NCBI GenBank assembly: GCA_977020255.1
Contig: CDROCS010000546.1
Location: 1 to 64,000 of the forward strand
Direction: 5' to 3'
Length of the DNA: 64,000 nt
DNA from: Obrimoposthia wandeli
Taxonomy: Eukaryota
The notes beneath the pieces were generated by a model, which was not told the origin of the DNA, did not search any database, and saw only the letters and a program-made list of their open reading frames with translations. Positions 1,592 to 20,924 of this stretch are shown in pieces; within the stretch, counting starts at the first letter, position 1; the number at the start of each line of letters is the position of its first letter. The translations under genes were made by a program, and so were the position numbers.

Positions 1592-2228
1592 ATGGATCAA
1601 GACGCTCAACCTAAGCCTAAACGCGTATCACGCAAACTCTGAAACGAAAATACTGCTGGCCATGAAGATAACCATTAAGCGCAATTTGGCTTTCAGGGCG
1701 GCTTGAGTAGCCACGATTGCCGAACAGTCGGGCCTGACTAAGCAAAACTTACTTTATTACTTTCCATCCAAAGAAGTTCTCTACCAGCGTGTGTTAGAAA
1801 ACATCCTCGAGTTATGGATCGATAAAATGGCGCTGCTAGAACAGCGCGGTGACGACCCTAAGTCGATGCTCAGCAGCTATATTCGCGGTAAAATTGAGAT
1901 ATCACAAAGCCATCCTAACGGTTCAAAAGTATTCGCCAATGAATTGATTCACGGTGCACCTCGCTTAAAATCACACTTGCAAGAGCATCTTCTTCCCCAG
2001 CTTGAGGCCGATGTTAAATTGATCCGCACTTGGATCAGCGATGGTAAAATGGATGACGTCGATCCCTACCATTTATTTTTCATGATATGGGCTAGTACCC
2101 AGACCTACGCTGACTTTTCATCGCAAATCGAACTAGCACTCGGAAAACCTAAACTAGAAGAGCAGGATTTTGAGACCGCGGTGGAATTCCTCACGACCAT
2201 GATTCTCAAAGGCTTGGGAATCTCTTAA
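1592..2228 (+). CDS. rutR: RutR-like TetR-family regulator; 5' part (about 1640-1706) is frame-disrupted (pseudogene or assembly error)
   Basis: HTH VATIAEQSGLTKQNLLYYFPSKE from 1707. C-terminal FANELIHGAP and DPYHLFFMIWASTQTYADF closely resemble RutR. Fragments KILLA and AQFGFQG lie in different frames upstream. Confidence 0.8.
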
Positions 2229-2602
2229 CTCTCTAAAGGCAATATGCTTTGCGCTGAAAAACACGAGTAGTTCGACTACTCGTGAGCCTTAACCTGGGCA
2301 AGTACATCTCCTCAAAAATACGCTGACTTTTCATCGCAAATCGCACTAACAATTGGAAAACCAATGCTAGAAGAGCAGGATTTTGAGACCGCGGTGGAAT
2401 TCCTCACGACCATGATTCTCAAAGGCTTGGGAATCTCTTAACTCTCTAAAGGCAATATGCTTTGCGCTGAAAAACACGAGTAGTTCGACTACTCGTGAGC
2501 CTTAACCTGGGCAAGTACACCTCCTCATAAAATACGCTGACTTTTCATCGCAAATCGCACTAATAATTGGAAAACCAATGCTAGAAGAGCAAGATTTTGA
2601 GA
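2107..2602 (+). repeat. Tandem duplication, about 2.3 copies of a 213-214 bp unit (rutR 3' end plus hairpin)
   Basis: acgctgacttttcatcgcaaatcg starts at 2107, 2320 and 2534. Confidence 0.95.
2262..2284 (+). terminator. Hairpin after rutR (second copy at 2475-2497)
   Basis: cacgagtagt-tcg-actactcgtg, a perfect 10-bp stem. Confidence 0.55.
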
Positions 2603-2860
2603 TAGGGCCCAGCCCCCTAACCCAATGATGCTGAAGGTTGAGCCTTGTCAGCCTTTTCGAGCAATTTAGCCACTCGTACAGTATCTACCCCCTCCACTTC
2701 GATAACTTTGGCTAGCTTTAACGAGCAGAAATATAGCCCCCTAGATTTTCCCTCTCTGTGGCTCCTTGCACTTAATCTCACCAAACGCTTTGCTTAATCT
2801 TTAGCCAAAACAAACTAACTCATTGTTAAACAATGATATTAAATTTATCAAAATTAACTA

Positions 2861-2876
2861 TTGACCAACTGGTCAA
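2861..2876. promoter_or_regulatory. RutR-type operator, box 1
   Basis: TTGACCAACTGGTCAA is an exact match to the E. coli RutR consensus TTGACCAnnTGGTCAA. Confidence 0.85.
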
Positions 2877-2893
2877 GTACTGGATAGTATATA

Positions 2894-2909
2894 TTGACCA
2901 AACGGTAAA
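2894..2909. promoter_or_regulatory. RutR-type operator, box 2
   Basis: TTGACCAAACGGTAAA has 2 mismatches to the consensus and starts 33 bp after box 1. Confidence 0.7.
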
Positions 2910-3016
2910 ACTTTAGTTAAAAAGTAACACTGTAAAAACAACGAATAATAAATATAAAACGAGATCACTAACCGCCGTATTTTGCGGAATAGGATACTCG
3001 GTGTTGGAGAATTGGC

Positions 3017-4144
3017 ATGCTATCTATGGCACAGGCACTGGCTCTTGAAGGAGTGAGTGGCTCTGAACTCGATCAATTACGGCTACAAGCAAGCGCTGTG
3101 CGTGAATTGCACTGGGGCGATATCGTCACCTACTCGCGCAAGGTGTTTGTTCCACTGACCAATATGTGCCGTGACACTTGTACTTACTGTACTTTCGTCA
3201 AGCACCCAGATTCCCCCCTAGCCAACATAATGACCCCTGCACAAGTTATGAATGTGGTTGAGCAAGGGCAGAAAATGGGCTGTAAAGAAGTACTTTTCAG
3301 TTTGGGAGAAAAGCCCGAACGACGCTACGCGAAAGCCAAAGAAATGCTGGGGAACTTAGGTTACCAGCACATGACGGACTACTTGCACGATGTCTGCCAG
3401 CAAGTAATAGATGAGAGCGACATGCTACCTCACATCAACGTTGGCACCATGAGTTCAGACGAAATCCGTTTGTTAAAGCCAGTCAGTGCCAGCATGGGGA
3501 TGATGTTAGAAACCGTGTCAAAACGTTTACTCGTCAAAGGTAATGTCCATTACGCCTGTCCTGACAAAGTACCGCGTCAACGTTTACGTACCCTAGAGCG
3601 CGCCGGCAAGTTAGATGTCCCTTTCACCACCGGTATTTTGATCGGTATTGGTGAAAACTGGCAGGAACGCATTGAGAGCCTCATCGCGATCAACGAAATC
3701 CACCAGCAGTACGGTCATATTCAAGAAGTTATCGTCCAGAATTTTTGCGCCAAACCAGACACTGGAATGGCCAATGCTCCCGAGCCTGACCTAGATGACA
3801 TGTTGCGTACACTCGCCGTAGCCCGTCTTATTTTAGATCCCTCTATCAGCTTGCAAGCTCCACCGAATTTACAGGCCCGCTACAGCGCTTACCTAAACTC
3901 TGGAATCAACGATTGGGGCGGTATCTCGCCATTGACGTTAGATCACATCAATCCAGAGCGTGCCTGGCCGCAGATCGAGCAACTGGCGCAGGCCAGTGCG
4001 GAGAATAATTATCGCTTGCAAGAGCGTCTGGCTATTTACCCAAGCTATCAAAATTTACCCGAGCGCTATTTAAACGACAACATCGCGCATCGCGTTAGCA
4101 GTATTGCTCGCGCTGATGGCCTCGCAGCCGTGCAGTGTCTATAA
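3017..4144 (+). CDS. cofG: FO synthase subunit CofG (radical SAM)
   Basis: TYSRKVFVPLTNMCRDTCTYC (CxxxCxxC), SMGMMLE, PFTTGILIGIGE, IQEVIVQNF, GINDWGGISP. RBS ggaga upstream. Confidence 0.9.
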   Translation: MLSMAQALALEGVSGSELDQLRLQASAVRELHWGDIVTYSRKVFVPLTNMCRDTCTYCTFVKHPDSPLANIMTPAQVMNVVEQGQKMGCKEVLFSLGEKPERRYAKAKEMLGNLGYQHMTDYLHDVCQQVIDESDMLPHINVGTMSSDEIRLLKPVSASMGMMLETVSKRLLVKGNVHYACPDKVPRQRLRTLERAGKLDVPFTTGILIGIGENWQERIESLIAINEIHQQYGHIQEVIVQNFCAKPDTGMANAPEPDLDDMLRTLAVARLILDPSISLQAPPNLQARYSAYLNSGINDWGGISPLTLDHINPERAWPQIEQLAQASAENNYRLQERLAIYPSYQNLPERYLNDNIAHRVSSIARADGLAAVQCL

Positions 4145-4234: not shown

Positions 4235-5485
4235 GTGTTAGAGCAGCGAGAGAGGAAAGCCGACGTGAAGATTGAACAGATTCATAACAACACGACAGCA
4301 AATATCAACTGGCCGAGTGTCAGCCCAACCACTGCCGCTATTTTGCAAAGCGCACTGGCTGGGGATGAAGTGAGCGAAGCACAGGGTACTCACCTTTTTA
4401 TGTGTCTTGGCGATGATGTTAAGGCCATTACCCAGTGTGCCGATATTTTGCGCCAGCGCGCCGTCGGCGACAGTGCCAGCTACGTCATTACCCGCAATAT
4501 CAACTTCACCAACATTTGCTACATGGGCTGTAAATTCTGCGGTTTCGCCAAACGTAAAACCGCCGCTGAAGCTGAACTATTACCCATGGCAGAAATTGCC
4601 AAGCGCGCTCAAGAGGCGTGGGACCGAGGCGCCACTGAAGTCTGTATTCAAGGTGGCTTACACCCAGACCTACGCCCGGAACACTACCGTGAAATACTGT
4701 TAACCATTAAAGCTCAAGTGCCTGACATGCACATTCACGCCTTCTCGCCATTTGAAATTTGGTATGGCGCACTCAAAAGCAAGTTGTCATATCGTGAATT
4801 CATTCAAGATTTGATGGATTGTGGCCTAGGTTCAATGCCCGGCACCGCAGCAGAAATTCTCGATGTAGAAATTCGTCAACAACTCACTCGTGACAAGTTG
4901 ACCACCGCACAGTGGGTCGAAATCATTAGTACTGCGCATCAACTCGGCTTGCCGACAACGTCAACGATTATGTACGGCCATATCGATCAGCCCCATCACT
5001 GGTCAGCTCACATTGCGCTACTACGTGACATGCAAAAACAACACGGCGGTTTCACTGAGTTCGTGCCGCTAGGTTTTGTGCACTACGAATCACCACTGTA
5101 CACCGATCGTAAAAAGCTAAAATTGAATGTCCGCCCCGGACCTACCGAGCGCGAAAATATTCTGATGCACGCCGTGTCACGCATCATGCTCAACGGTTGG
5201 ATCGATAATATCCAGGCCTCTTGGGTCAAATTAGGTCCCGACTATGCCCGTCAAATGCTTAGATCTGGCGCCAATGATTTGGGCGGTACATTAATGGATG
5301 AAAGTATTACTCGCTCATCAGGCGGCACCCACGGTGAAGAAATATCCCCAGAGCAGATGCAGCAGATGGCACATGATGCTGGCTTATCGCCCTATCGTCG
5401 CAGTACTTTATACGCAGAATTAGAACGCTTTCCACTCACCGTGAATAACAATTTGATTGCCACCTCTCGCGGGGCTGTTGCATGA
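4235..5485 (+). CDS. cofH: FO synthase subunit CofH (radical SAM); start codon uncertain
   Basis: RNINFTNICYMGCKFC, EVCIQGG, HAFSPFE, SMPGTAAEIL, NIQASWVK, ANDLGGTLMDESI. Confidence 0.9.
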   Translation: MLEQRERKADVKIEQIHNNTTANINWPSVSPTTAAILQSALAGDEVSEAQGTHLFMCLGDDVKAITQCADILRQRAVGDSASYVITRNINFTNICYMGCKFCGFAKRKTAAEAELLPMAEIAKRAQEAWDRGATEVCIQGGLHPDLRPEHYREILLTIKAQVPDMHIHAFSPFEIWYGALKSKLSYREFIQDLMDCGLGSMPGTAAEILDVEIRQQLTRDKLTTAQWVEIISTAHQLGLPTTSTIMYGHIDQPHHWSAHIALLRDMQKQHGGFTEFVPLGFVHYESPLYTDRKKLKLNVRPGPTERENILMHAVSRIMLNGWIDNIQASWVKLGPDYARQMLRSGANDLGGTLMDESITRSSGGTHGEEISPEQMQQMAHDAGLSPYRRSTLYAELERFPLTVNNNLIATSRGAVA

Positions 5486-6441
5486 GCCAGAAAATCTTAT
5501 TATTAGCAGGGGGCGTCGGCGGTGCCAAAATGGCCGAAGGCTTATTGCACTCTAGCGCTGGCGAGCAATTCAGTATTTTAGGTAACATTGCTGATGATCA
5601 AGAAATTCACGGCCTTTGGGTATCACCTGACATAGATACTGTCACTTATACTTTAACCGATCGTATCGATCGCGAAAAAGGCTGGGGCTTAAAGAGTGAG
5701 AGTAATCGGACCTTAGATGCACTCAATACTTTAGGTGCTGACACGTGGATGTACTTGGGCGATCAGGATTTTGCCACTCATATCTACCGTACTGAACAGC
5801 GCAAAAAGGGACTGCGTCCCAGTGTGATCGCCGCCGATATCGCACAGAAACTCGGCCTCACTGTTCCATTGTTGCTACCCACCGATGACATCGTACAAAC
5901 CAAGCTTAATACCGATTTGGGTTGGCTCGATTTTCAAAGCTATTTTGTGCGTCATCAGTGCAGCCCACAGATTAATCATATCGTCTTTGAAGGAGCTACC
6001 CAAGCGAGTGCGACACCTGAGGCACTGGCGGCCATTGGCGAAGCTGATATTATTATTTTCGCCCCGAGTAATCCTATTGTCAGTATTGGGGCAATTTTAG
6101 CGGTTCCCGCTATCAAGCAAGCTATCGCTGAGAGTAAGGCTTATAAATTGGCAGTATCACCCTTAATTGGCGGTAAAACCGTTAAAGGTCCTGCAGATGA
6201 CATGCTACGTGCCAGCGGTATCCGCTGTGATTCATTAGGTGTGGCGCAGCACTATCGCGATTTAATAGACGCCATCGTGATCGATCAATGTGACAACCAA
6301 CTCAGTGCCCCCATCGAAGCGCTAGGTTTAGCCGTACATAGCAGCCAAACTTTGATGCAAAACCGTCAAGATAAAATCGCGCTAGCCGAATTTTTATTAC
6401 AGTGTGTCCCAAGTTCACAAACACAGCGGGAGGCTTGCTAA
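5482..6441 (+). CDS. cofD: Phospholactate/phosphoenolpyruvate transferase CofD (FbiA)
   Basis: LAGGVGGAK, SPDIDTVTYTL, LGDQDFATH, APSNPIVSI, VSPLIGG and KGPA motifs. ATGA overlap with cofH. Confidence 0.93.
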   Translation: MSQKILLLAGGVGGAKMAEGLLHSSAGEQFSILGNIADDQEIHGLWVSPDIDTVTYTLTDRIDREKGWGLKSESNRTLDALNTLGADTWMYLGDQDFATHIYRTEQRKKGLRPSVIAADIAQKLGLTVPLLLPTDDIVQTKLNTDLGWLDFQSYFVRHQCSPQINHIVFEGATQASATPEALAAIGEADIIIFAPSNPIVSIGAILAVPAIKQAIAESKAYKLAVSPLIGGKTVKGPADDMLRASGIRCDSLGVAQHYRDLIDAIVIDQCDNQLSAPIEALGLAVHSSQTLMQNRQDKIALAEFLLQCVPSSQTQREAC

Positions 6442-7136
6442 TGCGATCCGGTAAAGGCCTTTGCATTGTCATCCCGATGAAAAATCCACAAGACTCAAAG
6501 CAACGATTGCGTTCAGTGCTCGGTAGTAATGAGCGCCAATCACTGGCATTGATTCTGTTTAATCAAACTCTAAATTTTCTACGTCGGCACTTTAACACCA
6601 CCGATGTTCTGGTCGTGACTCCCTCACAGCGTATTGCTGATATGAGTCACAACCTTGGGGCTCGCAGCTTGCTGGAAGATGCATTGCCTAAACACGATGA
6701 GCGAGACCTCAACGGAGCGCTTTCAGGTGCTGCGCTGTGGTGCTGCGAGCAAGGTTATAGCAGCCAGCTTATTTTACCTGCTGACATTGTCGATCTCGAC
6801 TTTGTGGAGCTGCAACAACTCATTGCCGGAAAAATCACTGCCCCGAGTGTCACTATTTGCCCGGCAAGTGATGGCGGTACCAATGCACTACTCACGAGTC
6901 CGCCGGATATTATTCCCTTCAGCTATGGCTTCAATTCCAGCACACAACACTCTTTGGCGGCCAGTATTCAGGGGATAGAGCCGCGCCTACTTAAGTTGGA
7001 AAAACTCGCTTTTGATTTAGACACCCCGCGCGATTACCAAAGCGCCTGTGGCCACTCAGTTATTGGCAATTCACTGGCACAACTAGCGCAACACAGTCAT
7101 CAGCAAAACCGCAAACAACACAGGGCATCCCTATGA
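6441..7136 (+). CDS. cofC: Guanylyltransferase CofC (FbiD)
   Basis: VIPMK..SKQRL, PADI, GGTNAL, F.YG..S..H and DLDTPRD motifs. ATG at 6441 overlaps the cofD stop. Confidence 0.9.
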   Translation: MRSGKGLCIVIPMKNPQDSKQRLRSVLGSNERQSLALILFNQTLNFLRRHFNTTDVLVVTPSQRIADMSHNLGARSLLEDALPKHDERDLNGALSGAALWCCEQGYSSQLILPADIVDLDFVELQQLIAGKITAPSVTICPASDGGTNALLTSPPDIIPFSYGFNSSTQHSLAASIQGIEPRLLKLEKLAFDLDTPRDYQSACGHSVIGNSLAQLAQHSHQQNRKQHRASL

Positions 7137-7936
7137 ACTCACCTGCACAGATAGCCACCGAGGTAGAACAGGTACAGATGCTTGCCATTACCGGTATTCC
7201 AGACATTGTCCCTGGAGACGATTTAGCCACTGAGATCCTCAAGGCAATGCAAGGATTGTCACTCTCACTGCGCGATGGTGACATTTTAGTGATTGCCCAC
7301 AAGGTGGTCTCTAAAGCAGAGGGACGGATCGTTAAATTGGCCGATGTAACCCCCAGTGAGCAAGCATTAGAACTCGCGCAAAAACTCAACAAAGACCCAG
7401 CTAAAGTACAGTGTGTCTTAGATGAATCAACTCGGATAGTACGCGCCAACAAGCGTCCCGATCAGGATGAAGGTTTAATTATTGCCGAACATAAACTCGG
7501 CTTTATTTGCGCTAACGCCGCTGTCGATGAGTCCAATGTCGACCAACCCGGTCACGTTATTTTATTACCTAAAGACCCCGATCACAGCGCACGTCAAATT
7601 TGCGCTGCGCTTGAGCGCACCACTGATACGCAGATCGGCATCGTGATCACTGACACATTTGGTCGTCCTTGGCGCACCGGCTTAGTTAATGTCGCCATTG
7701 GTTTAGCGAATGTGCCGAGCAACGTCAACATGGCGGGTGAATCTGACGCTTACGGTCGTGAACTGCGTGTGACTGTGCCCGCATTGGCAGATGAGCTGGC
7801 CGCAGCATCTGGCCTATTAATGAGCAAAGAGGGTAAAAAGCCGGTGTTGTTATTTCGTGGTGTACCTTGGCAGCGTTGCCAGAGCAGCGCTCGCGATTTA
7901 ATACGCCCAGCAACAGAAGATTTATTTAGACAGTAA
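7133..7936 (+). CDS. cofE: Coenzyme F420-0:L-glutamate ligase CofE, single domain with no nitroreductase
   Basis: [30 protein letters not shown] and [10 protein letters not shown] motifs. 267 aa. Confidence 0.92.
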
Positions 7937-7974: not shown

Positions 7975-8646
7975 ATGACAATAGCTATTCTCGGCGGAAC
8001 AGGCCCTCAAGGTAAAGGATTAGCACTGCGTTTTGCCAAAGCAGGTGTCGATGTCATTCTCGGTTCGCGCGATGCAGCGCGCGCCGCCGATATCGCCAGT
8101 GAACTCAACGCCGCTATTCCAGGTGCGCCCGGTACAATTAGCGGCAGCGATAATATAAGCGCGGTGCAAGGCGCAAAAGAACATGTTGTGCTAGCAGTCC
8201 CTTATAGCGCGCACAACGCCACGCTTAATGATATTAAAGCGGACTTGGCGGGCAAGATACTGATCGACATTGTCGTACCGCTAAAAGATGGCGACCCCAA
8301 AGCGGTCGACATGCCGGTGGAAGGTTCTGCAACTGAAGCCGCACAGGCGATACTGGGGGCAGACATTCCAGTGGTCGGTGCCCTGCACAATGTCTCTGCT
8401 ATTTCTTTGAATAAGCTAGACGTTCCAATCAACTGCGATATTTTGGTGTGCGGTAACAATTTAGCGGCCAAGGAGAAAGTGATCACCCTCGTTCAAACTC
8501 TTGGCGTGCAAGCCTATAACGTTGGCCCTGCCGTCAACGCGCGCTGCGTCGAGGCGATCACCCCGATCCTTATACGTCTCAACATTTCCAAGAAAGTCCC
8601 TTTCTCCCACGCTGGGATAAAGATATGTGCACCACAAGATCATTAA
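7975..8646 (+). CDS. npdG: NADPH-dependent F420 reductase (Fno/NpdG)
   Basis: [36 protein letters not shown] and ALHNVSA motifs. Located in the cof operon. Confidence 0.9.
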
Positions 8647-8789: not shown

Positions 8790-9794
8790 ATGGAATTTGG
8801 TATTACATTTAAAGGGTTTGTCGAGCCACAAAGAGCACGTAATTTAGTGAGACAAGCGGAAGAAGCTGGCTTTACCCACTGCTGGTTTTACGATTCGCAT
8901 GTATTGTGGCGCGAGTGCTACCCCGCCATTGCAATGTGCATGGAGCACACCACTAAAATGAAGTTCGGCCCCTGTGTAACTAACCCTAATTCACGCGATT
9001 GGTCAGTGGCTGCCAGCTTATTTGGCAGCTTGGCTAAGCAGAGTAACGGTCGCTTTGTCGTCGGTCTTGGCCGCGGTGACAGCGCAATGCGTGTCATGGG
9101 TAAAAAACCAGCCAACTTGGCACGTGTTGCTGAATTCACTCAAAAAGTTAAAGCGATGGTGCGCGGTGAAGAAGTGCAATACGGTGAGAGCCCAGAGCCG
9201 GTAAAATTCCCTTGGGCAGATGGCTATGAACTACCTATACACATTGGCGCCTACGGTCCTAAAGCCCTAAAAACAGCGGGCGAAGTAGGTGACGGTGTTA
9301 TTTTGCAAATTGCCGACCCTTCACTGGTTAAATGGTTTGCCGAGCAGGCAATCAGTGCCGGTAAAGAAGCGGGGCGTGATATGTCGAACTTCCAAGTTAT
9401 CGCCTCTGCTCCCGCATACATGGGTGACATGGATAAATGCCGTGAAGCGACACGTTGGTTCCCTGCGATGGTCGGTAACCACGTGGCTGATATCGTCGAA
9501 AAATACGGTGCCCACTCAGGTTTAGTGCCAGAAAGTTTGACCAATTATATCGAGCAGCGTAAAGGCTATGATTATTCAAAACACGGTCAGAGCGACAATC
9601 CATACTTGGATTTCATCACCAATGACATCATCGACAGCTTCAGCGTATTAGGTGAGCCAGATGCCCACATCAAGAAGATACAAGAGTTAGAAGCCGTTGG
9701 TACTACCCAGTTCAATATCTATCTGGATAGCGGTGATGAAGAGCAAATTATTGCCGATTATGCCAACAAGATCATTCCAGCTTTTCGCAAGTAA
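8790..9794 (+). CDS. Luciferase-like (LLM), probably F420-dependent oxidoreductase resembling the CPS_4043 (TIGR03842) family
   Basis: Mer-like TIM barrel: AEEAGF..CWFYDSH, GPCVTNP..R, GRF.VGLGRGDS, GAYGPKAL..AGEVGDG. Family name is recalled and not HMM-checked. Confidence 0.8.
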   Translation: MEFGITFKGFVEPQRARNLVRQAEEAGFTHCWFYDSHVLWRECYPAIAMCMEHTTKMKFGPCVTNPNSRDWSVAASLFGSLAKQSNGRFVVGLGRGDSAMRVMGKKPANLARVAEFTQKVKAMVRGEEVQYGESPEPVKFPWADGYELPIHIGAYGPKALKTAGEVGDGVILQIADPSLVKWFAEQAISAGKEAGRDMSNFQVIASAPAYMGDMDKCREATRWFPAMVGNHVADIVEKYGAHSGLVPESLTNYIEQRKGYDYSKHGQSDNPYLDFITNDIIDSFSVLGEPDAHIKKIQELEAVGTTQFNIYLDSGDEEQIIADYANKIIPAFRK

Positions 9795-9840: not shown

Positions 9841-11073
9841 ATGAAAGACATAAAAGTTAACGGCCAGCGTCTCTGGGATAGCTTGATGGAAATGGCTAAG
9901 ATTGGCGCCACTGAAAAAGGCGGCGTCTGCCGTTTAGCCCTCACCGATTTAGACCGAGAAGGTCGCGACCTTTTCGTCGCTTGGTGTAAAGAGGCTGGCT
10001 GCACAATCAAAATTGATAAAATGGGTAACATCTTTGCCCGCCGTGCCGGTAAAAATAACGACCTACCACCCGTTGTAATGGGCAGTCATTTAGACACTCA
10101 GCCCACGGGTGGTAAGTTCGATGGAATTTACGGTGTGCTGGCAGGGCTTGAAGTTATTCGCACCCTCAACGATAACAACATTGAGACCGCCGCTCCGATA
10201 GAAGCGTCTGTGTGGACCAATGAAGAGGGATCACGTTTTCCGCCTGCCATGGTTGCCTCTGGTGTGTTTGCCGGTGTCTTCGATCTAGAATACGGTTTGA
10301 GCCGCGCTGATCTCGATGGAAAAACCATGGGAGAAGAATTAGAGCGTATCGGCTACGCGGGCGCTGAAGAAATGGGCAACCGCACGATCAAAGCGTTCTT
10401 TGAGGCTCATATCGAACAGGGCCCTATTTTAGAGGACGAGAACATCACTATTGGTGTTGTCACCGATGCGCAAGGACAGCGCTGGTATGAAGTGCGCTTA
10501 ACCGGACAGGAAGCACACGCCGGACCCACTCCGATGTCGCGCCGCAAAGATGCGCTAGTCGGTGCCGCGCGTATTATTGATGAGGTAAACAGAATCGGCC
10601 TCGCCAATGCACCACTGGCTTGCTCAACGGTTGGTTTAATGCAGATACATCCCAATTCACGTAATGTCATTCCCGGCGAAGTTTTTTTCACCGTGGACTT
10701 TCGCCATCCAGATGATGCTGTGCTCTCTAAGATGGATAGCGCGTTACGCGAATTTGTCGCTAAAAGCAGTAAGGAGCTAGGGTTAGAACTAGATTTTCAA
10801 GAAATTTGGTACTCACCTCCTGTACCTTTTAATAAATCTTGTGTCGACTCAGTGCGCGAAGCGGCAAAAAAGGCTGGTTATAGCCACCGTGATATTGTCA
10901 GTGGCGCCGGTCATGACGCCTGCTATATCTCACGTGTTGCGCCTACTGCTATGGTATTTGTTCCCTGTGAAGGCGGCATCAGCCATAACGAAATCGAAAA
11001 CGCTGAGCCAGAGCATCTAGAAGCTGGCTGTAACGTATTGATTCAGGCAGTATTGCTACAAGCAAACGATTAA
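9841..11073 (+). CDS. M20-family Zn-dependent hydrolase, beta-ureidopropionase / N-carbamoyl-L-amino acid amidohydrolase (PydC-like)
   Basis: RLWDSLMEMAKIGAT, GSHLDTQPTGGKFDG, WTNEEGSRF, EAHIEQGP, HAGPTPM, SGAGHDA and GGISHN motifs. Confidence 0.88.
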   Translation: MKDIKVNGQRLWDSLMEMAKIGATEKGGVCRLALTDLDREGRDLFVAWCKEAGCTIKIDKMGNIFARRAGKNNDLPPVVMGSHLDTQPTGGKFDGIYGVLAGLEVIRTLNDNNIETAAPIEASVWTNEEGSRFPPAMVASGVFAGVFDLEYGLSRADLDGKTMGEELERIGYAGAEEMGNRTIKAFFEAHIEQGPILEDENITIGVVTDAQGQRWYEVRLTGQEAHAGPTPMSRRKDALVGAARIIDEVNRIGLANAPLACSTVGLMQIHPNSRNVIPGEVFFTVDFRHPDDAVLSKMDSALREFVAKSSKELGLELDFQEIWYSPPVPFNKSCVDSVREAAKKAGYSHRDIVSGAGHDACYISRVAPTAMVFVPCEGGISHNEIENAEPEHLEAGCNVLIQAVLLQAND

Positions 11074-11270
11074 TCACGACGCTGGCGTACTCTCGCCAGC
11101 GACTTTTCCACCTGCCACCGGCCCTCGTCAAAAACCGCTTCTGATTACCTCCCCACTGACCATCTAAACAAGCGTTTTACTAAAAAGATCAATATGTACC
11201 TTAGGACACTACCTTTAAACTGAACGCTATATTAACATTGCCTGAATATAAAATTACTGAGGACACGGCG

Positions 11271-12924
11271 ATGGGTAACCCTTACTTGCGCGAAGCTAAC
11301 AATTTAAAGGCCGCATTTGTAGCCAGTAGCCAAAATATCTCTGAAACTCAGGTTGTTGATGCGAGAGGTTTAAGCTTTAAGCAGATGATCACTGAATTTA
11401 CCGAGATCAACTTTCCCAGTGGTAGAAATTTAAAGCAAAAAATAAATTGGGCTCGGGCTAATTTTTCAGATCAAATAAGCGCTGAAGATTACGGTCAAGT
11501 TCCAAAGAATAAAAACCGTGCCTGGAAAAAATGGAAGAAATTGATATCTGCCGCTATTCTCGAGGATGTCGCTGCTAATCAACTCCCTCTGGAAGAAGTT
11601 AATCCTGTCGTAAGACCAGAAGTAGTCGAACCAGAGATGGAAGCTGTCAGCACTAGCGAAATTAAAGCTAAACCTGAGCCTGAAATTACGGTTAACCCCG
11701 CGCCTCCTGCCGAAGTAATCGACGCTGTCAGCACTGGCGAAATTAAAGCTAAACCTGAGCCTGAAATTACGGTTAATCCCGCGCCTCCTGCCGAAGTAAT
11801 CGATGCTGTCAGCACTGGCGAAATTAAAATTAAACCTGAGCCTGAAATTACGGTTAACCCCGCGCCTCCAGCCGAAGTACTTGGTGCTGTTAGTACTAGC
11901 GAAATTAAAGCTAAACCTGAGCCTGAAATCACGGTTAACCCCGCGCCTCCTGCCGAAGTAATTGATGCTGTCAGCACTGGCGAAATTAAAGCTAAACCTA
12001 AGCCCGAAATTACGGTTAATCCCGCGCCTCCAGCTGAAGTACTTGGTGCTGTTAGTACTAGCGAAATTAAAGCTAAACCTGAGCCTGAGCCTGAAATTAC
12101 GGTTAATCCCGCGCCTCCAGCTGAAGCACCCATAATGATGCTTAAAAAGCAAACCCTGAGCCTGACATTACGGTTAATCAAGTAATTGATGCTGTCAGCA
12201 CTGGCGAAATCAAAGCTAAACCTGAGCCAGAAATTACGGTTAATCCCGCGCCTCCTGCCGAAGTAATTGATGCTGTCAGCACTGGCGAAATCAAAGCTAA
12301 ACCTGAGCCAGAAATTACGGTTAATCCCGCGCCTCCTGCCGAAGTAATTGACGCTGTCAGCACTGCTAAAGCTAAACCTGACGAAATCACGGTTAATCCT
12401 ATGCCTCCTGCCGAGAATTTGACGCTGTCAGCACTGGCGAGATCAAGCCTAAACCTGAACCCGAAATCACGGTTAACCCCGCACCTCCAACCGAAGGACT
12501 TGATGCTGTCAGTACTGGAGAAATTAAACCTGACCTTGGCGTTACGGTTAATCCAGCTCCCCCTATTATTCAACCCGAATTGGCCACCATGACTTCGCTT
12601 CTTATGCCTGAACATGACGTCATGATCATCACTAACCCAATGCCATTATTCGAAGATAATAGTTTTATAGGGATCAGCGACATCAAATCTGAGACTGAAG
12701 TGTCTGCTAGCCCTATTCTGATAAGTCCAATGTTAGATATACATTTAGATGACATGCTAGATATGTCCATTGATGATATATCCGCAGCACTGGCTAGTTT
12801 GAGTGCACCATTGGCCAGTGCTGCGCACTCAGAACCGCTGGAGCAACCTATGGCTCACTTTGATCAGGGAATCCTTTCTGCAAACGCTGACTTAGTAAGA
12901 GACGATTTAGTGGTAGATGCGTAA
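11271..12924 (+). CDS. Hypothetical protein with Pro/Glu-rich 27-aa tandem repeats, interrupted by two frame changes inside the repeat
   Basis: RBS gagga before ATG 11271. The repeat is read in one frame to about 12125, a second from about 12182 and a third from 12421, which runs into the acidic tail ending at 12924. Confidence 0.6.
11643..12563 (+). repeat. 81-bp coding tandem repeat (AVSTGEIKAKPEPEITVNPAPPAEVID), about 12 units
   Basis: Unit starts at 11643, 11724, 11805, 11886, 11967, 12048, a degenerate unit near 12135, then 12191, 12272, 12353, 12424 and 12505. Confidence 0.95.
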
Positions 12925-15605: not shown

Positions 15606-16721
15606 TTAATTTAGTTCGATCCAACACTGATTGTCGTTGGATCGCCAAGCGGCATCGATAATTTCACTGACCGCTAAACCATCGCTAAACTGTGGCCATT
15701 TTGTATGACCGCTGTCGATAGCCGCTAAAAAATCTCTAGCTTCCAAAATTAACTGATCCTGATAACCCGTGCCATGCCCCGGTCCCTCACAAAACAGCCC
15801 GTAATCGGGATGGTCAGTACCCGTTAGTATTTTGCGAAACCCTCGCTGTGCCTCCGGACCTTCATTCAAATAAAGCCACAATGCATTTTGATCCTCTTGA
15901 TCAAAGCGCAAGGCACCTTTAGTACCACTGACTTCGTAGGCAAAACCCATCTTGCGTCCAGTGGCAATACGGCTAAAGGATAAATGCCCGCTAAAACCTT
16001 TGGCAAACGTGCAGATAAACTGTCCTTGGTCATCGTTCGTCACTTCTTGCTGACCCTTTTTAGGCGGCCGTAATGAGTGCACCGTTTCTATCTGAGCGCA
16101 CAGTTTACTTATAGGTCCCATCAAAAACAGCGCCGCGTTAATCATATGAGGCGCTAAGTCCCCCATCGTACCGTTTGCCCTATCACAGGTGCGCCAGCTG
16201 GCCATCTGCTGTGGGTCGGCATAAAAATCTTCGCTGTGTTCACCGCGAAAATAGGTGATATCACCCAACACACCTGAATCAATCAGCTGTTTGGCATATT
16301 GAGTCGCTGGGGTGCGTATATAGTTAAAACCAAGCATATTGACGGTATTATTCTGTGCCGCCAAAGAGACCATCTCACGAGCATCCTCTAGTGAGCCGCC
16401 CAATGGCTTTTCACACAGTACGGGTTTGCCAAGTTTGGCAGCTAGACGGTAGATTTCGCAATGTGTTTGCTGTGGACTGGCGATCACTATCGCCTCAACT
16501 TTAGGGTCTTCTACCAATGTTTGCCAATTCGCTGTCGATCGTTTGAAGCCGAGTTCTGCTGCTTTGATAGCAGCACCTTCAGTCGTCGTGGTGCAGATCA
16601 TTTCACACACTGGTCGTAAATATGTATTACACAGTGCACCGACTGCCTGCAGCGCAACCGCATGGCGTTTTCCCATATAACCCGCGCCGATTACTCCAAT
16701 ACCTATCGCCTTAGTTGTCAT
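15606..16721 (-). CDS. Gfo/Idh/MocA oxidoreductase (inositol dehydrogenase-like)
   Basis: IGVIGAGYMG and VLCEKPL motifs. Lies in the iol cluster. Confidence 0.85.
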   Translation of the reverse strand: MTTKAIGIGVIGAGYMGKRHAVALQAVGALCNTYLRPVCEMICTTTTEGAAIKAAELGFKRSTANWQTLVEDPKVEAIVIASPQQTHCEIYRLAAKLGKPVLCEKPLGGSLEDAREMVSLAAQNNTVNMLGFNYIRTPATQYAKQLIDSGVLGDITYFRGEHSEDFYADPQQMASWRTCDRANGTMGDLAPHMINAALFLMGPISKLCAQIETVHSLRPPKKGQQEVTNDDQGQFICTFAKGFSGHLSFSRIATGRKMGFAYEVSGTKGALRFDQEDQNALWLYLNEGPEAQRGFRKILTGTDHPDYGLFCEGPGHGTGYQDQLILEARDFLAAIDSGHTKWPQFSDGLAVSEIIDAAWRSNDNQCWIELN

Positions 16722-17554
16722 TTATCTTCACCTAAGATTGTTAAAATACGCAGCGCTTCCTCTTCAATATATGGCATCAGCTTTTGCATAAAATATTGGC
16801 GATCGTACTGCTCGGGCTCTTCGTTCATTAGACGCCGCAGGTTAGTGCCAATCACTTGACGAAGAGAGGTGCCTACATTGAATTTTGCCACTGCACTGCG
16901 TTTAAGTGTCAGTAAATCCGCATCTCGAATTCCCGACGTCCCATGGATTACCAGTGGGACGTCTACTAACTGTTCAATACGTTGTAATCGATCGAAATCA
17001 ATTGTGCTACTCGGTGTCGATAAACGATGGATATTACCGACCGCCACTGCCACACAATCTATACCACTTTCACTGGCATAACGCGCCGCTTCTTCTGGTT
17101 CACTAAAGACAGATTTAATGTGATCGCGACCCTCTTCATAGGGCACTGAGCCAATTTCACCTTCGACGCTGATATTCAGCGCATGTGCAACTTGCACAAC
17201 CTGTTGAGTACGGCGAATATTTTCATTGAGAGATAGCTGCGAGCCATCGAACATCACCGAGCTATACCCTGCATCCATTGCCTGATAAACCACGGCCTCA
17301 TCGTAGCAATGGTCCAAATGCAAACACACAGGTGCACTACTTCGAGCGATCATCGGCAGTAACATACCCGCGAGTGTTTTCACTCCCAATTGCTCTACCA
17401 TATCCTTATTGGTTGCCAATATCACCGGACACTGTCGTTTTTGTGCCGCGTTAATAATCGCCTGTGCATCTTCAAAACCGAAAACATTACAGCAGGCAAT
17501 TGCGCCTTTACTGGCACTGGCTTGGGGAAGTATTTGATTGAGGTTAACTAACAT
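16718..17554 (-). CDS. iolJ: Class II aldolase, IolJ-like (6-phospho-5-dehydro-2-deoxy-gluconate aldolase)
   Basis: LHLDH, SSVMFDGS, VEGEIG, AVGNIH, LVIHGTSG and KFNVGT motifs. The iol context supports the symbol. Confidence 0.75.
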   Translation of the reverse strand: MLVNLNQILPQASASKGAIACCNVFGFEDAQAIINAAQKRQCPVILATNKDMVEQLGVKTLAGMLLPMIARSSAPVCLHLDHCYDEAVVYQAMDAGYSSVMFDGSQLSLNENIRRTQQVVQVAHALNISVEGEIGSVPYEEGRDHIKSVFSEPEEAARYASESGIDCVAVAVGNIHRLSTPSSTIDFDRLQRIEQLVDVPLVIHGTSGIRDADLLTLKRSAVAKFNVGTSLRQVIGTNLRRLMNEEPEQYDRQYFMQKLMPYIEEEALRILTILGEDK

Positions 17555-17634
17555 GCGTATCCTCTTTGTTACAGCACAATTCGGTGCTGCTCATCATTAT
17601 TGAGAGCTCATCGCCACGTCTAAGTAACTATGCG

Positions 17635-18486
17635 CTACTTAAATTTGGCCACCATATCTTTGATACCAGGGATCGTATGTACTTGATACTCGTGATGCGG
17701 ATCCCAGTATTGACGCAGCGATTTGGATTTCTCGCCCACGATAATAGTGAAGTAATACATTTCATAACCCGGGGCTGCAACGCTGGGGTGGTACCCTTTA
17801 TCAATGGCAATGACACTACCCGTTTTGACATGATATGCAGGGCCGCAGTCATCTTCATTTTCATAGAGAAACTGTGCCCCAAACCCCTTCCCTGGATTGA
17901 AACGAAATTGATATACCTCTTCGAAGCGTGTCTCCATCGGTGGCCGCTCTATATCATGTTTATGTGAGGGAAAACCTGACCACCCGCCGGCCCCTACTGT
18001 AAAGAGTTCACTCACCAGCAAACGGCCACGCAAGTCTGCATTCTTTTGTCCGAGTATGTGTTTTATTTTACGGTGTGTTTTGGTGTCATCGCTGCCATAT
18101 TGCACAGTGTCTTCCAACGTATCGCCATCACTCACCATAAAGGGTGTCAGCTGTTTATCGTAGCGACCGCCGGCGATAAATATATCTGCCTGTTCACTCG
18201 TACAATGAATAACCGCCTCTCTCGCTAAAGGAATATAAACTGAGGCCGGATCCCCGCTCCAAACATCTTTACGACGCCCTATATTAGTAAAAGACTCACC
18301 GGCAACTTCAATATCACAACGACCACCCGCTAACACCACTATTGACTCGTAATTATCTAGACAATAACGATAGCTCTCTCCAAGCTTTAAATGAACGTTG
18401 TTGAAATAACACAGCGGCGTCGTGTCATCATTTACATCGATAATCGCTTGGTTCTGATTGTCATATGGAGCGATATGCTTCCCCAT
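17635..18486 (-). CDS. iolB: 5-deoxy-glucuronate isomerase
   Basis: SELFTVGAGGWSGFPSHKHD, EEVY.FRF and GYHP motifs. Confidence 0.88.
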   Translation of the reverse strand: MGKHIAPYDNQNQAIIDVNDDTTPLCYFNNVHLKLGESYRYCLDNYESIVVLAGGRCDIEVAGESFTNIGRRKDVWSGDPASVYIPLAREAVIHCTSEQADIFIAGGRYDKQLTPFMVSDGDTLEDTVQYGSDDTKTHRKIKHILGQKNADLRGRLLVSELFTVGAGGWSGFPSHKHDIERPPMETRFEEVYQFRFNPGKGFGAQFLYENEDDCGPAYHVKTGSVIAIDKGYHPSVAAPGYEMYYFTIIVGEKSKSLRQYWDPHHEYQVHTIPGIKDMVAKFK

Positions 18487-18488
18487 GA

Positions 18489-19496
18489 TTAGTCTCCTGT
18501 TGTTATTTTATAGTTGTGTTGCGCCATAAACTCGATCAGCTGTCCTAAGTTAGGTAACGCTTGGGTACAGCTAGTACCTGCGACATTGATCGCTGCACTT
18601 GCAGCGCCCATAGCCACCGCATCTTCAAGAGAATAGGCATGCGTTAAGGCGTAAAGTAACGTACCTGCGAATGCATCACCGGCACCAAAAGGCTTCAGTG
18701 CTTGTACGTTGAATACCGGGCCTGCGAACGCCTCACCAATGGCCGGGTACACGTTGGATCCATCCTCTCCAGCTTTAATAATCACCAGCGAACAGCCCTG
18801 CTTCAAAAGTGCCTTCGCCCTCTTTTCATCTGTGCCAACTGCGTCTAAATCGATCACTTCAAGAATGTCAAATTCTTCCGTGTTGCCAATGACAACGTCA
18901 CAAAGTGCTACCGCCAATTGATAGTACAGTGAGGCAGTTTCAACATCTGGCCAAGAATATGCACGATAATCCATGTCTAGTACGACAAGCGTATTCACAC
19001 TGCGTGCACGTTTCATCGCTAGTAAAGTCGCCTCTCTTGATGGGCTTGCACACAGTGCTGTGCCTGAAATAAGCAGCATTTTTGCCTTGGCAATATAGTG
19101 AGTATCTATCTGCTGTACCCGCAGCGCTAAGTCTGCGGCACTGTTGCGGTAAAGTACGACTTCAGGCTGTTCTGGCTGCATTTGAGTGATTGCCAAACTC
19201 GTGCGCGTACCACTGCTATCGACCTGCATTCCATCGAGATTAACCCCTTGTTGGCGTAAATAATCACAGACGTAATCACCTAAACCATCTGCCGATACAC
19301 AGCCAATAAACCCGGCCTTACCACCAAGTTTTGCCACTGCCGTTGCAATATTGGCGGGTGAGCCGCCGACGTATTTATCAAAACCGCTAACCTCTCCCAA
19401 AGAGGTATGCGATTGTTGCGCGTATAGATCAACACCTGCTCGCCCCAGACAGATAACATCTAATTCACGGTTTTTCTCGAACGTTAACATCGCCAT
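18489..19496 (-). CDS. iolC: 5-dehydro-2-deoxygluconokinase (PfkB family), stand-alone
   Basis: LGRAGVDLY, GGSPANIA, DMDYR and GAGDAF motifs. 335 aa with no C-terminal aldolase domain. Confidence 0.88.
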   Translation of the reverse strand: MAMLTFEKNRELDVICLGRAGVDLYAQQSHTSLGEVSGFDKYVGGSPANIATAVAKLGGKAGFIGCVSADGLGDYVCDYLRQQGVNLDGMQVDSSGTRTSLAITQMQPEQPEVVLYRNSAADLALRVQQIDTHYIAKAKMLLISGTALCASPSREATLLAMKRARSVNTLVVLDMDYRAYSWPDVETASLYYQLAVALCDVVIGNTEEFDILEVIDLDAVGTDEKRAKALLKQGCSLVIIKAGEDGSNVYPAIGEAFAGPVFNVQALKPFGAGDAFAGTLLYALTHAYSLEDAVAMGAASAAINVAGTSCTQALPNLGQLIEFMAQHNYKITTGD

Positions 19497-19639
19497 CAGA
19501 TAACCTCCTTCACTGATTCATCAACACGATTCATTCCAGCCGATTGAATAGGTTGCGGTTTCGTATAGAGATCAACGCCAAGGCGCCCCAGACAGATAAC
19601 ATCCAATTCACGGTTTTTCTCTAACGCCAGCGGACTCAT
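19496..19639 (-). pseudogene. 47-codon relic duplicating the N-terminus of iolC
   Basis: MSPLALEKNRELDVICLGRLGVDLY versus IolC MAMLTFEKNRELDVICLGRAGVDLY. TGATG overlaps at both ends. Confidence 0.8.
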
Positions 19640-20826
19640 CAGAAAGAGACCCAGGCTGAATCATTATCTGCCGACTCAACACAACACTCCAACAGGCGAA
19701 CACCTTCTATGCCGTCATCAATATCGGGGAACCAGATCTTAGCCAATGCCTGTTTGTCATCGCGATCCATGGCATCCATCGCTAAGGCATAGCGATGATA
19801 CAAGTTAGCCCAAGATTCAAAAAAGCCCTCTGGATGGCCACCGCCAATACGATTGCAACTCACTGCATCATCATCAGCCATATAACCCATTCCGCGCTCA
19901 AGTGTTTGCGCCGGCTGTCCTTGCATCTCTAGCAGTAACTGGTTGGGCCTTTCATCCCACCATTCAATGCTGCCTTTTTCACCGACAACGCGGACAATTT
20001 GACGATGCATTGAACCGGCATTAACTGAACTTGCCCACAGAGTTCCCACCGCACCACTTTCAAATTTGAGCATGACATGCGCGTTATCTTCCAAGGGAGC
20101 ACGTGAGGCAACAAAGCTCTGGCGCATGCAACTTAGCTTTTCTACTTTGAGGTCTGTCATCAAACTGGCGAGATAAAAGGTATGCGTTCCCAAATCACCG
20201 AGCACATAACTAGGCCCTGATATCTGTGGATTCATCCGCCATTTGGCACCTGGGCTGTGCTCTTCAATCGCAGTGTTATGAAAACCGTGTGCAAAGCTCA
20301 TATTAACGACCCGTACCGCTCCAATGTCACCGCGTGCAATCATCGCCCGTGCTTGATGAACTGTCTGGTAACCCGAGTAGCCATACATCACGGCAAATAC
20401 TTTACCCAACGCTTGCGCCTGGGCTTTTAGCTTTTCTGACTCGGCGACGGTAAAAGTCACTGGTTTCTCACATATCACATGTAAACCGGCTTCCAATGCG
20501 GCACTGCAAATAGCAAAATGCGTACCATTGGGTGTTGCCACTGACACCGCTTGAATACCATCTTCACGCTGACTTTCAGCGGAAAACATAGCTTGATAAT
20601 CACTGTAGCAGCGATCTGCAGCGACCCCTAAATTGGTAGCGAATTCTTGGTTGCGTGCTGGATCGAGATCAAAACAACCAGCCTCTAAACAAAATAAATT
20701 ATCTCTAGCTGCCGCTGCGCGATGGGCGTGACCAATTTCACTACCGCGACCACCCCCTACCATTGCCCAGCGAATTGGCTGTGCTAATCTTCTCTCTTCG
20801 TTAAACATTTTTAACCTCTTATGCAA
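19639..20826 (-). CDS. Gfo/Idh/MocA oxidoreductase
   Basis: RWAMVGGG.GS.IG..H, ICEKP, GDLGTH and GHPEGF motifs. Confidence 0.85.
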   Translation of the reverse strand: MHKRLKMFNEERRLAQPIRWAMVGGGRGSEIGHAHRAAAARDNLFCLEAGCFDLDPARNQEFATNLGVAADRCYSDYQAMFSAESQREDGIQAVSVATPNGTHFAICSAALEAGLHVICEKPVTFTVAESEKLKAQAQALGKVFAVMYGYSGYQTVHQARAMIARGDIGAVRVVNMSFAHGFHNTAIEEHSPGAKWRMNPQISGPSYVLGDLGTHTFYLASLMTDLKVEKLSCMRQSFVASRAPLEDNAHVMLKFESGAVGTLWASSVNAGSMHRQIVRVVGEKGSIEWWDERPNQLLLEMQGQPAQTLERGMGYMADDDAVSCNRIGGGHPEGFFESWANLYHRYALAMDAMDRDDKQALAKIWFPDIDDGIEGVRLLECCVESADNDSAWVSF

Positions 20827-20924
20827 ACCTTCACTCGTTACATCGTGTAAAGGTCTCTTATTATTAATTTCTGCTAAATTCTGCTCGACTGGGCGTGTAA
20901 AATTTTATTGTGTATGCGATAGAC

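Follow-up and report, generated by a model that had tools for sequence, protein, structure and literature searches.

What would place the biosynthesis of a redox cofactor under the control of a pyrimidine-sensing repressor? The question is raised by a stretch of 64,000 nucleotides (the window, in what follows) from the assembly GCA_977020255.1 of Obrimoposthia wandeli (contig CDROCS010000546.1, positions 1 to 64,000), in which two 16-bp boxes of the RutR type lie upstream of a cof operon for cofactor F420. A first-pass annotation of this DNA had proposed that F420 biosynthesis is under apparent pyrimidine control here. In the analysis presented below, the boxes are very probably the operators of an adjacent RutR/PydR-like TetR repressor on the core promoter of the operon cofGHDCE-npdG-LLM-carbamoylase, to judge by sequence comparison. 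A 2021 review of F420 described its role in Proteobacteria as unknown, with no F420-dependent enzyme of these bacteria studied, and called for experimental work to establish that role (PMC8498797). Only trace amounts of F420 have been reported, in Paracoccus denitrificans and Oligotropha carboxidovorans (PMC8498797). The conserved operator points to uracil or thymine as a candidate inducer, to reductive pyrimidine catabolism as the pathway, and to the LLM-class protein of family TIGR03842 as a candidate enzyme.

Two probable operator boxes on one predicted core promoter

Both 16-mers were confirmed at their positions: box 1 at 2861-2876 (TTGACCAACTGGTCAA) and box 2 at 2894-2909 (TTGACCAAACGGTAAA), neither assigned a strand. 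They are 33 bp apart from start to start and lie 156-108 bp upstream of the cofG start codon (ATG at 3017). The description of box 1 as the exact consensus was correct. It has 0 mismatches to the RUT box consensus TTGACCANNTGGTCAA, a 16-bp palindrome taken from published work (PMC2952853), and is counted as a RUT box on that ground. Box 2 has 2 mismatches to TTGACCANNTGGTCAA, and in relatives it mostly reads TTTACCnnnTGGTAAA. No other site in the 64-kb window comes within one mismatch of TTKACCNNNNGGTMAA. At up to 3 mismatches, 5 sites were counted versus 3.0 expected from shuffles of the window. Since the shuffle counts are unremarkable, non-randomness is argued from the perfect palindrome (14 specified bases, with a chance expectation of about 2e-4 per 64 kb by our arithmetic), from the neighboring box and, above all, from conservation.

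The boxes had been placed just downstream of the RutR-like gene. They are indeed downstream of it, but at a distance of 633 bp past its stop at 2228. Upstream of rutR itself, no box was found in the window or in close relatives; autoregulatory-looking boxes occur solely where rutR diverges from the M20 gene (loci L071 and L084). A riboswitch or other RNA element at 2200-3100 was also considered and was rejected, as Rfam gave a chance-level match (E = 0.37).

How are the boxes arranged relative to the promoter? A promoter scan, independent of any alignment, calls TTGACC-18-TAGTAT. The predicted -35 (2861-2866) is the left half, TTGACC, of the perfect palindrome in box 1, and the predicted -10 hexamer, TAGTAT, follows 18 bp later at 2885-2890 on the plus strand. 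The -35 falls within box 1, and box 2, which begins 4 bp past the -10, extends over the predicted start of transcription. The same layout was seen when 19 loci with 33-bp spacing were aligned and anchored on box 1. In order, the alignment shows an A/T-rich stretch, TTGACCAnnTGGTAAA, a conserved TAgtaT 18 bp after TTGACC, and TT(G/T)ACCnnnTGGTAAA. The information content across these 19 loci is 1.53 bits for box 1 and 1.61 for box 2, compared with 0.55 in the upstream flank and 0.27 in the downstream flank. The TAgtaT of the -10 is a further peak, and a TAnnnT pattern is found at equal offset in related loci. By their predicted positions, the boxes are laid out as expected for a repressor that occludes the promoter. 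If one box sits on the -35 of a single promoter and its partner on the start site, the fixed spacing needs no cooperativity, and this placement explains the spacing at least as well as cooperative binding does.

Conservation of the boxes and content of the regulon

A search with CofG, limited to one genome per species, returned 80 loci, 78 of them usable. The closest by CofG are those of a Pseudomonadales metagenome-assembled genome (91%), Gammaproteobacteria bacterium AS21 (87%), Motiliproteus and Nitrincola. Remoter ones include Halopseudomonas, Halomonas, Marinobacter, Colwellia and Vibrio olivae as well as the alphaproteobacterial Rhodobacteraceae, Cohaesibacter and Rhizobiaceae. The gene order cofGHDCE-npdG-LLM is constant in all loci, the M20 gene follows the LLM gene in most gammaproteobacterial ones, and most of the loci have a RutR-like gene no more than 8 kb away. 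Conservation of the motif upstream of orthologous cof clusters, which the first-pass annotation had singled out as a check, was borne out. A site with at most one mismatch was found within 350 bp upstream of cofG in 66 of the 78 loci, in Gamma- and Alphaproteobacteria alike, and 30 loci have a pair of boxes spaced 31-35 bp. Both other cof operons of the same assembly likewise have boxes. Site density is 3.56/kb upstream of cofG versus 0.023/kb in the remaining 1.1 Mb of the loci, a 152-fold enrichment, and many of these "background" sites actually stand before M20, CN-hydrolase or rutR genes.

When the genomes of five relatives were scanned strictly, each yielded between 0 and 4 sites. Targets of the pyd or rut type, which such a scan was expected to return, were found among them. 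In Nitrincola, two boxes beyond the cof pair precede an operon for an NCS1 permease and a dihydropyrimidinase. One box precedes a CN-hydrolase-NCS1-dihydropyrimidinase cluster in an Oceanospirillales genome; AS21 has one before its CN-hydrolase gene and another beside dihydropyrimidinase. By genome, it is in G002 and G003 that boxes stand ahead of the NCS1-dihydropyrimidinase operon. The M20 carbamoylase gene has boxes of its own in loci L018, L028 and L084. The CN-hydrolase and M20 genes under the motif are identified at family level only. Dihydropyrimidinase scores above the cut-off in all five relatives (TIGR02033, 590-618 bits), and the window's own contig (C546) carries an intact dihydropyrimidinase gene beyond the window, at 77318-78754.

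In the five relatives, RutA was not found, and neither was a dihydropyrimidine dehydrogenase of the PreA/PydA type; their PF01180 proteins are all PyrD-type. The second PF01180 gene of G003, considered as a PydA, was rejected as a PyrD-type dihydroorotate dehydrogenase.

Two side observations concern Motiliproteus. Its cof clusters (L018:15150-15767 and L028:14921-16374) include GTP cyclohydrolase II (ribA), the supplier of the FO precursor. In one cluster, a gene for a Tsx-like nucleoside channel separates LLM from M20, and a pair of boxes stands ahead of M20.

Could the conserved pattern simply be a strong promoter (UP element, -35 and -10) whose dyad symmetry arose by chance, with no repressor site? 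The resemblance of TTGACC to the sigma-70 -35 consensus and the position of the boxes on either side of a -10 would suit this. On the other hand, box 2, on the downstream side of the -10, mostly begins TTTACC, a hexamer unlike a -35, and the right half-sites GGTAAA and GGTCAA are conserved as well as the left ones. The 16-mer also recurs before NCS1-dihydropyrimidinase, M20, CN-hydrolase and rutR genes, and in Rhodobacteraceae it is a single full palindrome 31-45 bp before the ATG. A promoter without an operator is, on this evidence, extremely unlikely.

The regulator and its contact residues

The regulator encoded next to the operon was characterized mainly through its intact orthologue in the closest metagenome-assembled genome (locus L016). 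Its best matches in PDB are the E. coli RutR structures 3LOC and 4JYK (2.6e-48), and among families RutR ranks first, with a lead of more than 140 bits. The C-terminal 145 residues of the window's own regulator match the RutR family TIGR03613 at 1.9e-34.

Are the residues that contact uracil and DNA retained? In E. coli RutR, uracil is contacted by L74, W77, L78, Y97, K101, L134, W167, Q171 and Q179 (PMC4325133; Y97 is printed there as "Tyr79", and the alignment gives Y97). Among 28 cof-linked regulators, W77, Y97, K101, W167, Q171 and Q179 are invariant and L74 and L134 nearly so, at an overall identity to E. coli RutR of 32-44%. At position 78, where the residue excludes thymine, they have L, I, V or M. 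The uracil-binding residues are likewise kept in the C-terminal part of the window's regulator. Within the helix-turn-helix, the DNA-contact residues K51, L55, Y56 and K61 of RutR (PMC2952853) are conserved too, in the form K-x-N-L/M-L-Y-Y-F-P-S-K in close cof-linked regulators and in the window gene as derived from reads.

Proposed mechanism and the candidate reductase

All genes of the window's operon lie on the plus strand. The first, cofG (3017-4144; TIGR03550, 472 bits, cut-off 213), encodes a subunit of FO synthase and is followed by cofH (4235-5485; TIGR03551, 489 bits, cut-off 374), cofD (5482-6441; TIGR01819, 271 bits, cut-off 257), cofC (6402-7136; TIGR03552, 135 bits, cut-off 105) and cofE (7133-7936; TIGR01916, 264 bits, cut-off 181). 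Next come npdG/Fno for an NADPH-dependent F420 reductase (7975-8646; TIGR01915, 183 bits, cut-off 150) and a gene for a Mer-like, LLM-class F420-dependent oxidoreductase (8790-9794; TIGR03842, 504 bits, cut-off 295). The closest solved structure to the LLM protein is an F420-dependent methylene-H4MPT reductase (1z69, 2e-33). The last gene (9841-11073) encodes an M20 hydrolase of the carbamoylase/allantoate-amidohydrolase type (NF006769, 695 bits; hydantoinase/carbamoylase family TIGR01879, 442 bits). By family and context, the LLM protein is a candidate uracil/thymine reductase and the M20 protein, assigned at family level, a candidate N-carbamoyl-beta-alanine amidohydrolase.

With the boxes, their conservation, the promoter geometry, the content of the regulon and the conserved ligand- and DNA-contact residues established, we infer binding, repression and the identity of the inducer as follows. 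Without ligand, a regulator dimer on each box would block RNA polymerase. Uracil, and possibly thymine, would bind the repressor and release it. The cell would then switch on the synthesis of F420 and its reduction by Fno together with the LLM reductase and the carbamoylase, and in relatives the separately boxed NCS1 permease-dihydropyrimidinase operon would be co-induced. The pyrimidine control of F420 biosynthesis suggested in the first-pass annotation is in this way supported by the conserved motif, the pyrimidine-gene regulon and the kept uracil pocket, and it remains a prediction from sequence.

If the LLM enzyme does reduce pyrimidines, an activity that we infer, how is it distributed relative to PreA? 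In 251 sampled Pseudomonadales genomes, counted above cut-off, the TIGR03842 enzyme occurs in 9 and PreA in 15, with both in 0. Dihydropyrimidinase is present in all 9 LLM genomes, mostly about 10 kb from the LLM gene, and in 10 of the 15 PreA genomes. The zero overlap of LLM and PreA among 24 dihydropyrimidinase genomes gives a hypergeometric P of 0.0015 (our arithmetic, with kinship ignored). A wider proposal can be built on this, to which we give even chances. In marine Gamma- and Alphaproteobacteria, F420 would mainly drive reductive pyrimidine catabolism, with the TIGR03842 LLM protein as a uracil/thymine-induced, F420H2-dependent dihydropyrimidine dehydrogenase that replaces PydA/PreA in Pseudomonadales and supplements it in Rhodobacterales. 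If true, repression in the absence of pyrimidines would also account for the trace F420 in cultures of Paracoccus and Oligotropha. The uracil-type operator on the cof promoter would provide the first case in which a nucleobase governs an operon of this kind for cofactor biosynthesis, and F420 would join NAD(P)H and ferredoxin as the third cofactor solution to the initial step of pyrimidine reduction.

Contrary observations and alternative readings

Several observations weigh against control of the operon by a pyrimidine-responsive RutR-like repressor, or against parts of it. No recognizable box was found in 12 of the 78 loci, mostly those of Alphaproteobacteria, and the locus was found in no RNA run. 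The relatives have a second RutR-like paralogue with W77L and a different recognition helix. In Nitrincola and AS21 (L138:5208-5822 and L139:4806-5426) this paralogue keeps Y97, K101, W167, Q171 and Q179. Because of its W77L, the cof-linked type alone, of the two RutR-like copies, has the complete uracil pocket. Simple replacement of PreA by the LLM enzyme is contradicted in Rhodobacterales, where PreA occurs in 178 of 201 genomes. Among the distinct cof-bearing Rhodobacterales genomes (the sample plus four handles), PreA is present in 4 of 7 and absent in 3 of 7. Mutual exclusion of the two enzymes was rejected as a general rule: it fails in this order and holds in the Pseudomonadales sample. 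The regulator itself scores below the RutR equivalog cut-offs (for the L016 protein, TIGR03613 at 190.4 bits with a cut-off of 368 and NF011584 at 186.4 with 230), and because of these scores it is classified, by sequence, as a distinct subfamily that is RutR/PydR-like rather than a strict RutR orthologue. The assembled regulator gene, finally, has -2, +2 and +1 indels and a TGA stop in 1638-1712 relative to L016 and AS21 (L017), and its predicted intact frame comes from one read-derived contig at a depth of about 4.6.

Some of these points would fit a related reading, in which the operators are real and the ligand is something other than uracil or thymine: a dihydropyrimidine, a hydantoin, another N-heterocycle or a deazaflavin precursor, with the operon serving another catabolic or detoxifying route. 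Such a ligand would be compatible with the scores under the equivalog cut-offs, with the variation at position 78 (the uracil-versus-thymine determinant in E. coli), with the family-level assignment of the M20 and CN-hydrolase genes, and with the coexistence of the F420 cluster with PreA/PydA in about half of the Rhodobacterales cases. It is less easily reconciled with the invariance of all six polar and stacking uracil contacts in 28 regulators, with a regulon that contains a bona fide dihydropyrimidinase (TIGR02033) and an NCS1 nucleobase permease, or with the Tsx nucleoside channel of the Motiliproteus cluster. A non-pyrimidine ligand is accordingly judged unlikely, and uracil or thymine is retained as the predicted inducer.

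Is the regulator of this bacterium alive? The gene (1592-2228, plus strand) is frameshifted between 1638 and 1712 as assembled, and read literally this would give a dead regulator with a broken helix-turn-helix, relic boxes and a constitutive cof operon. The tandem duplication of the 3' end of the gene might point the same way, as might the fact that no other copy above 75% identity exists beyond the two other cof-bearing contigs. The assembly was compared with the one public run found to contain the stretch (X1, with 76% of its words, probably made from the source sample), through a Logan contig over 1620-2188. This contig, the sole read-derived one there, departs from the window solely in a 75-bp patch (1638-1712), with 5 indel events (+CA after 1638, +G after 1661, -2 at 1670, -1 at 1677 and -1 at 1701) and 12 substitutions; its flanks are identical. 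When these differences are applied, an open frame of 211 residues results that is 84% identical to the L016 protein and has an orthologue-like helix-turn-helix. On the strength of this read-derived frame, the most likely explanation of the frameshifts is an error in the local consensus or a strain variant. The boxes themselves are both fully preserved, and the rest of the 1.6-kb stretch agrees with the reads. The dead-regulator reading, taken from the assembled frameshifts, was withdrawn when the reads gave an in-frame gene, and is now considered very unlikely.

The duplication at the end of rutR (2106-2602, no strand assigned) was delimited with Tandem Repeats Finder as 2.3 copies of a 213-bp period, 96% alike. 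Each unit spans the last ~120 bp of rutR plus a hairpin with a 10-bp stem. The gap between rutR and cofG is 789 bp in the window versus 312-389 bp in L016 and L017, and the duplication explains the longer gap as well as most of the 633 bp between the rutR stop and box 1. A read-derived contig covering 2372-2563 spans one end-to-start repeat junction, so the duplication is at least partly real; the bins at 2206-2313 have no read-derived contig.

Surrounding genes and the assembly

Upstream of the regulator, 54-1397 holds genes for a PabA-type glutamine amidotransferase and an Ldh_2-family dehydrogenase, followed by rutR, a synteny common to AS21 (L017) and the closest metagenome-assembled genome (L016). 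An open reading frame at 11238-12924, after the M20 gene, has no Pfam match; L016 has an unannotated open reading frame of 442 residues there. A minus-strand cluster at 15606-22802 resembles inositol catabolism, with IolB/KduI, a PfkB kinase, a class-II aldolase and two Gfo/Idh/MocA oxidoreductases. One neighbor of the second RutR-like paralogue in relatives is a gene of the SelO/YdiU family.

The assembly (G000) has 6912 contigs and a total of 1.35 Gb. Scanned in full for the motif, it gave 5 perfect matches, which equals the chance expectation and is uninformative. It has at least three different cof operons (contigs C546, C5947 and C2422), with CofG identities of 76-77%. Given the size of the assembly and its several cof operons, the window is a bacterial contig within an assembly of mixed or host-associated origin. 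Contigs C546, C5947, C2422 and C4268 represent three or more related bacteria, and every one of these bacteria has a cof operon and a RutR-like gene of its own. The assembly also contains many further RutR homologues at about 40% identity and resembles a host-plus-microbiome or metagenome assembly.

Comparison with known systems

The first-pass annotation knew of no nucleobase-responsive control of a cof operon, and no paper describing such control was found in the literature outside subscription journals. In the same literature, no paper joins RutR and F420, and none ties F420 to dihydropyrimidine, dihydropyrimidinase, ureidopropionase or pyrimidine catabolism in such bacteria. Known systems do resemble single parts of the locus. 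E. coli RutR acts at the RUT boxes of rutAG, rutR and carAB P1, and the 16-bp palindrome TTGACCAnnTGGTCAA is common to both systems. The TetR fold, the uracil contacts and K51, L55, Y56 and K61 are shared as well (PMC4325133; PMC2952853). The target is different, as the boxes precede an F420 biosynthesis operon here and not rut or carAB. Identity is only 32-44%, under the NCBI equivalog cut-offs, and RutA was not found in the five relatives. E. coli RutR has been reported on single sites as one dimer (PMC2952853), whereas two sites share one core promoter here. Operators of the QacR type may be likened to the pair in that two TetR-family dimers occupy one promoter region. QacR dimers, however, bind cooperatively to one 28-bp site (PMC2952853), in contrast to two 16-bp palindromes 33 bp apart.

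The nearest functional analogue may be PydR of Pseudomonas putida, which is RutR-like and represses the gene for dihydropyrimidine dehydrogenase (Hidese et al., 2012, cited in PMC4325133). Compared by that description, it is likewise a TetR repressor of the RutR-like kind that has the conserved uracil pocket and would govern the step that opens reductive pyrimidine catabolism. As described there, PydR controls an enzyme of the PydA/PreA type, whereas no such gene was found in the Pseudomonadales relatives here and the operon makes F420 and an LLM enzyme.

The nearest published idea comes from Chloroflexota, in which a putative F420-dependent reductase of the luciferase family replaces the PF01180-type reductase in a reductive uric-acid pathway (PMC12507026). 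That case is also a bioinformatic proposal, in which an F420-dependent LLM enzyme displaces a nucleobase reductase of the DHO_dh fold within a conserved pathway of the hydantoinase/carbamoylase type. It differs in phylum and in having a purine-derived intermediate as substrate; neither a regulator nor an operator was reported for it, and genes for F420 biosynthesis are not under the same control. As far as could be found, then, the operator pair is of the known RutR/PydR type, and the F420 biosynthesis operon joined to pyrimidine-catabolic genes is a new target for it.
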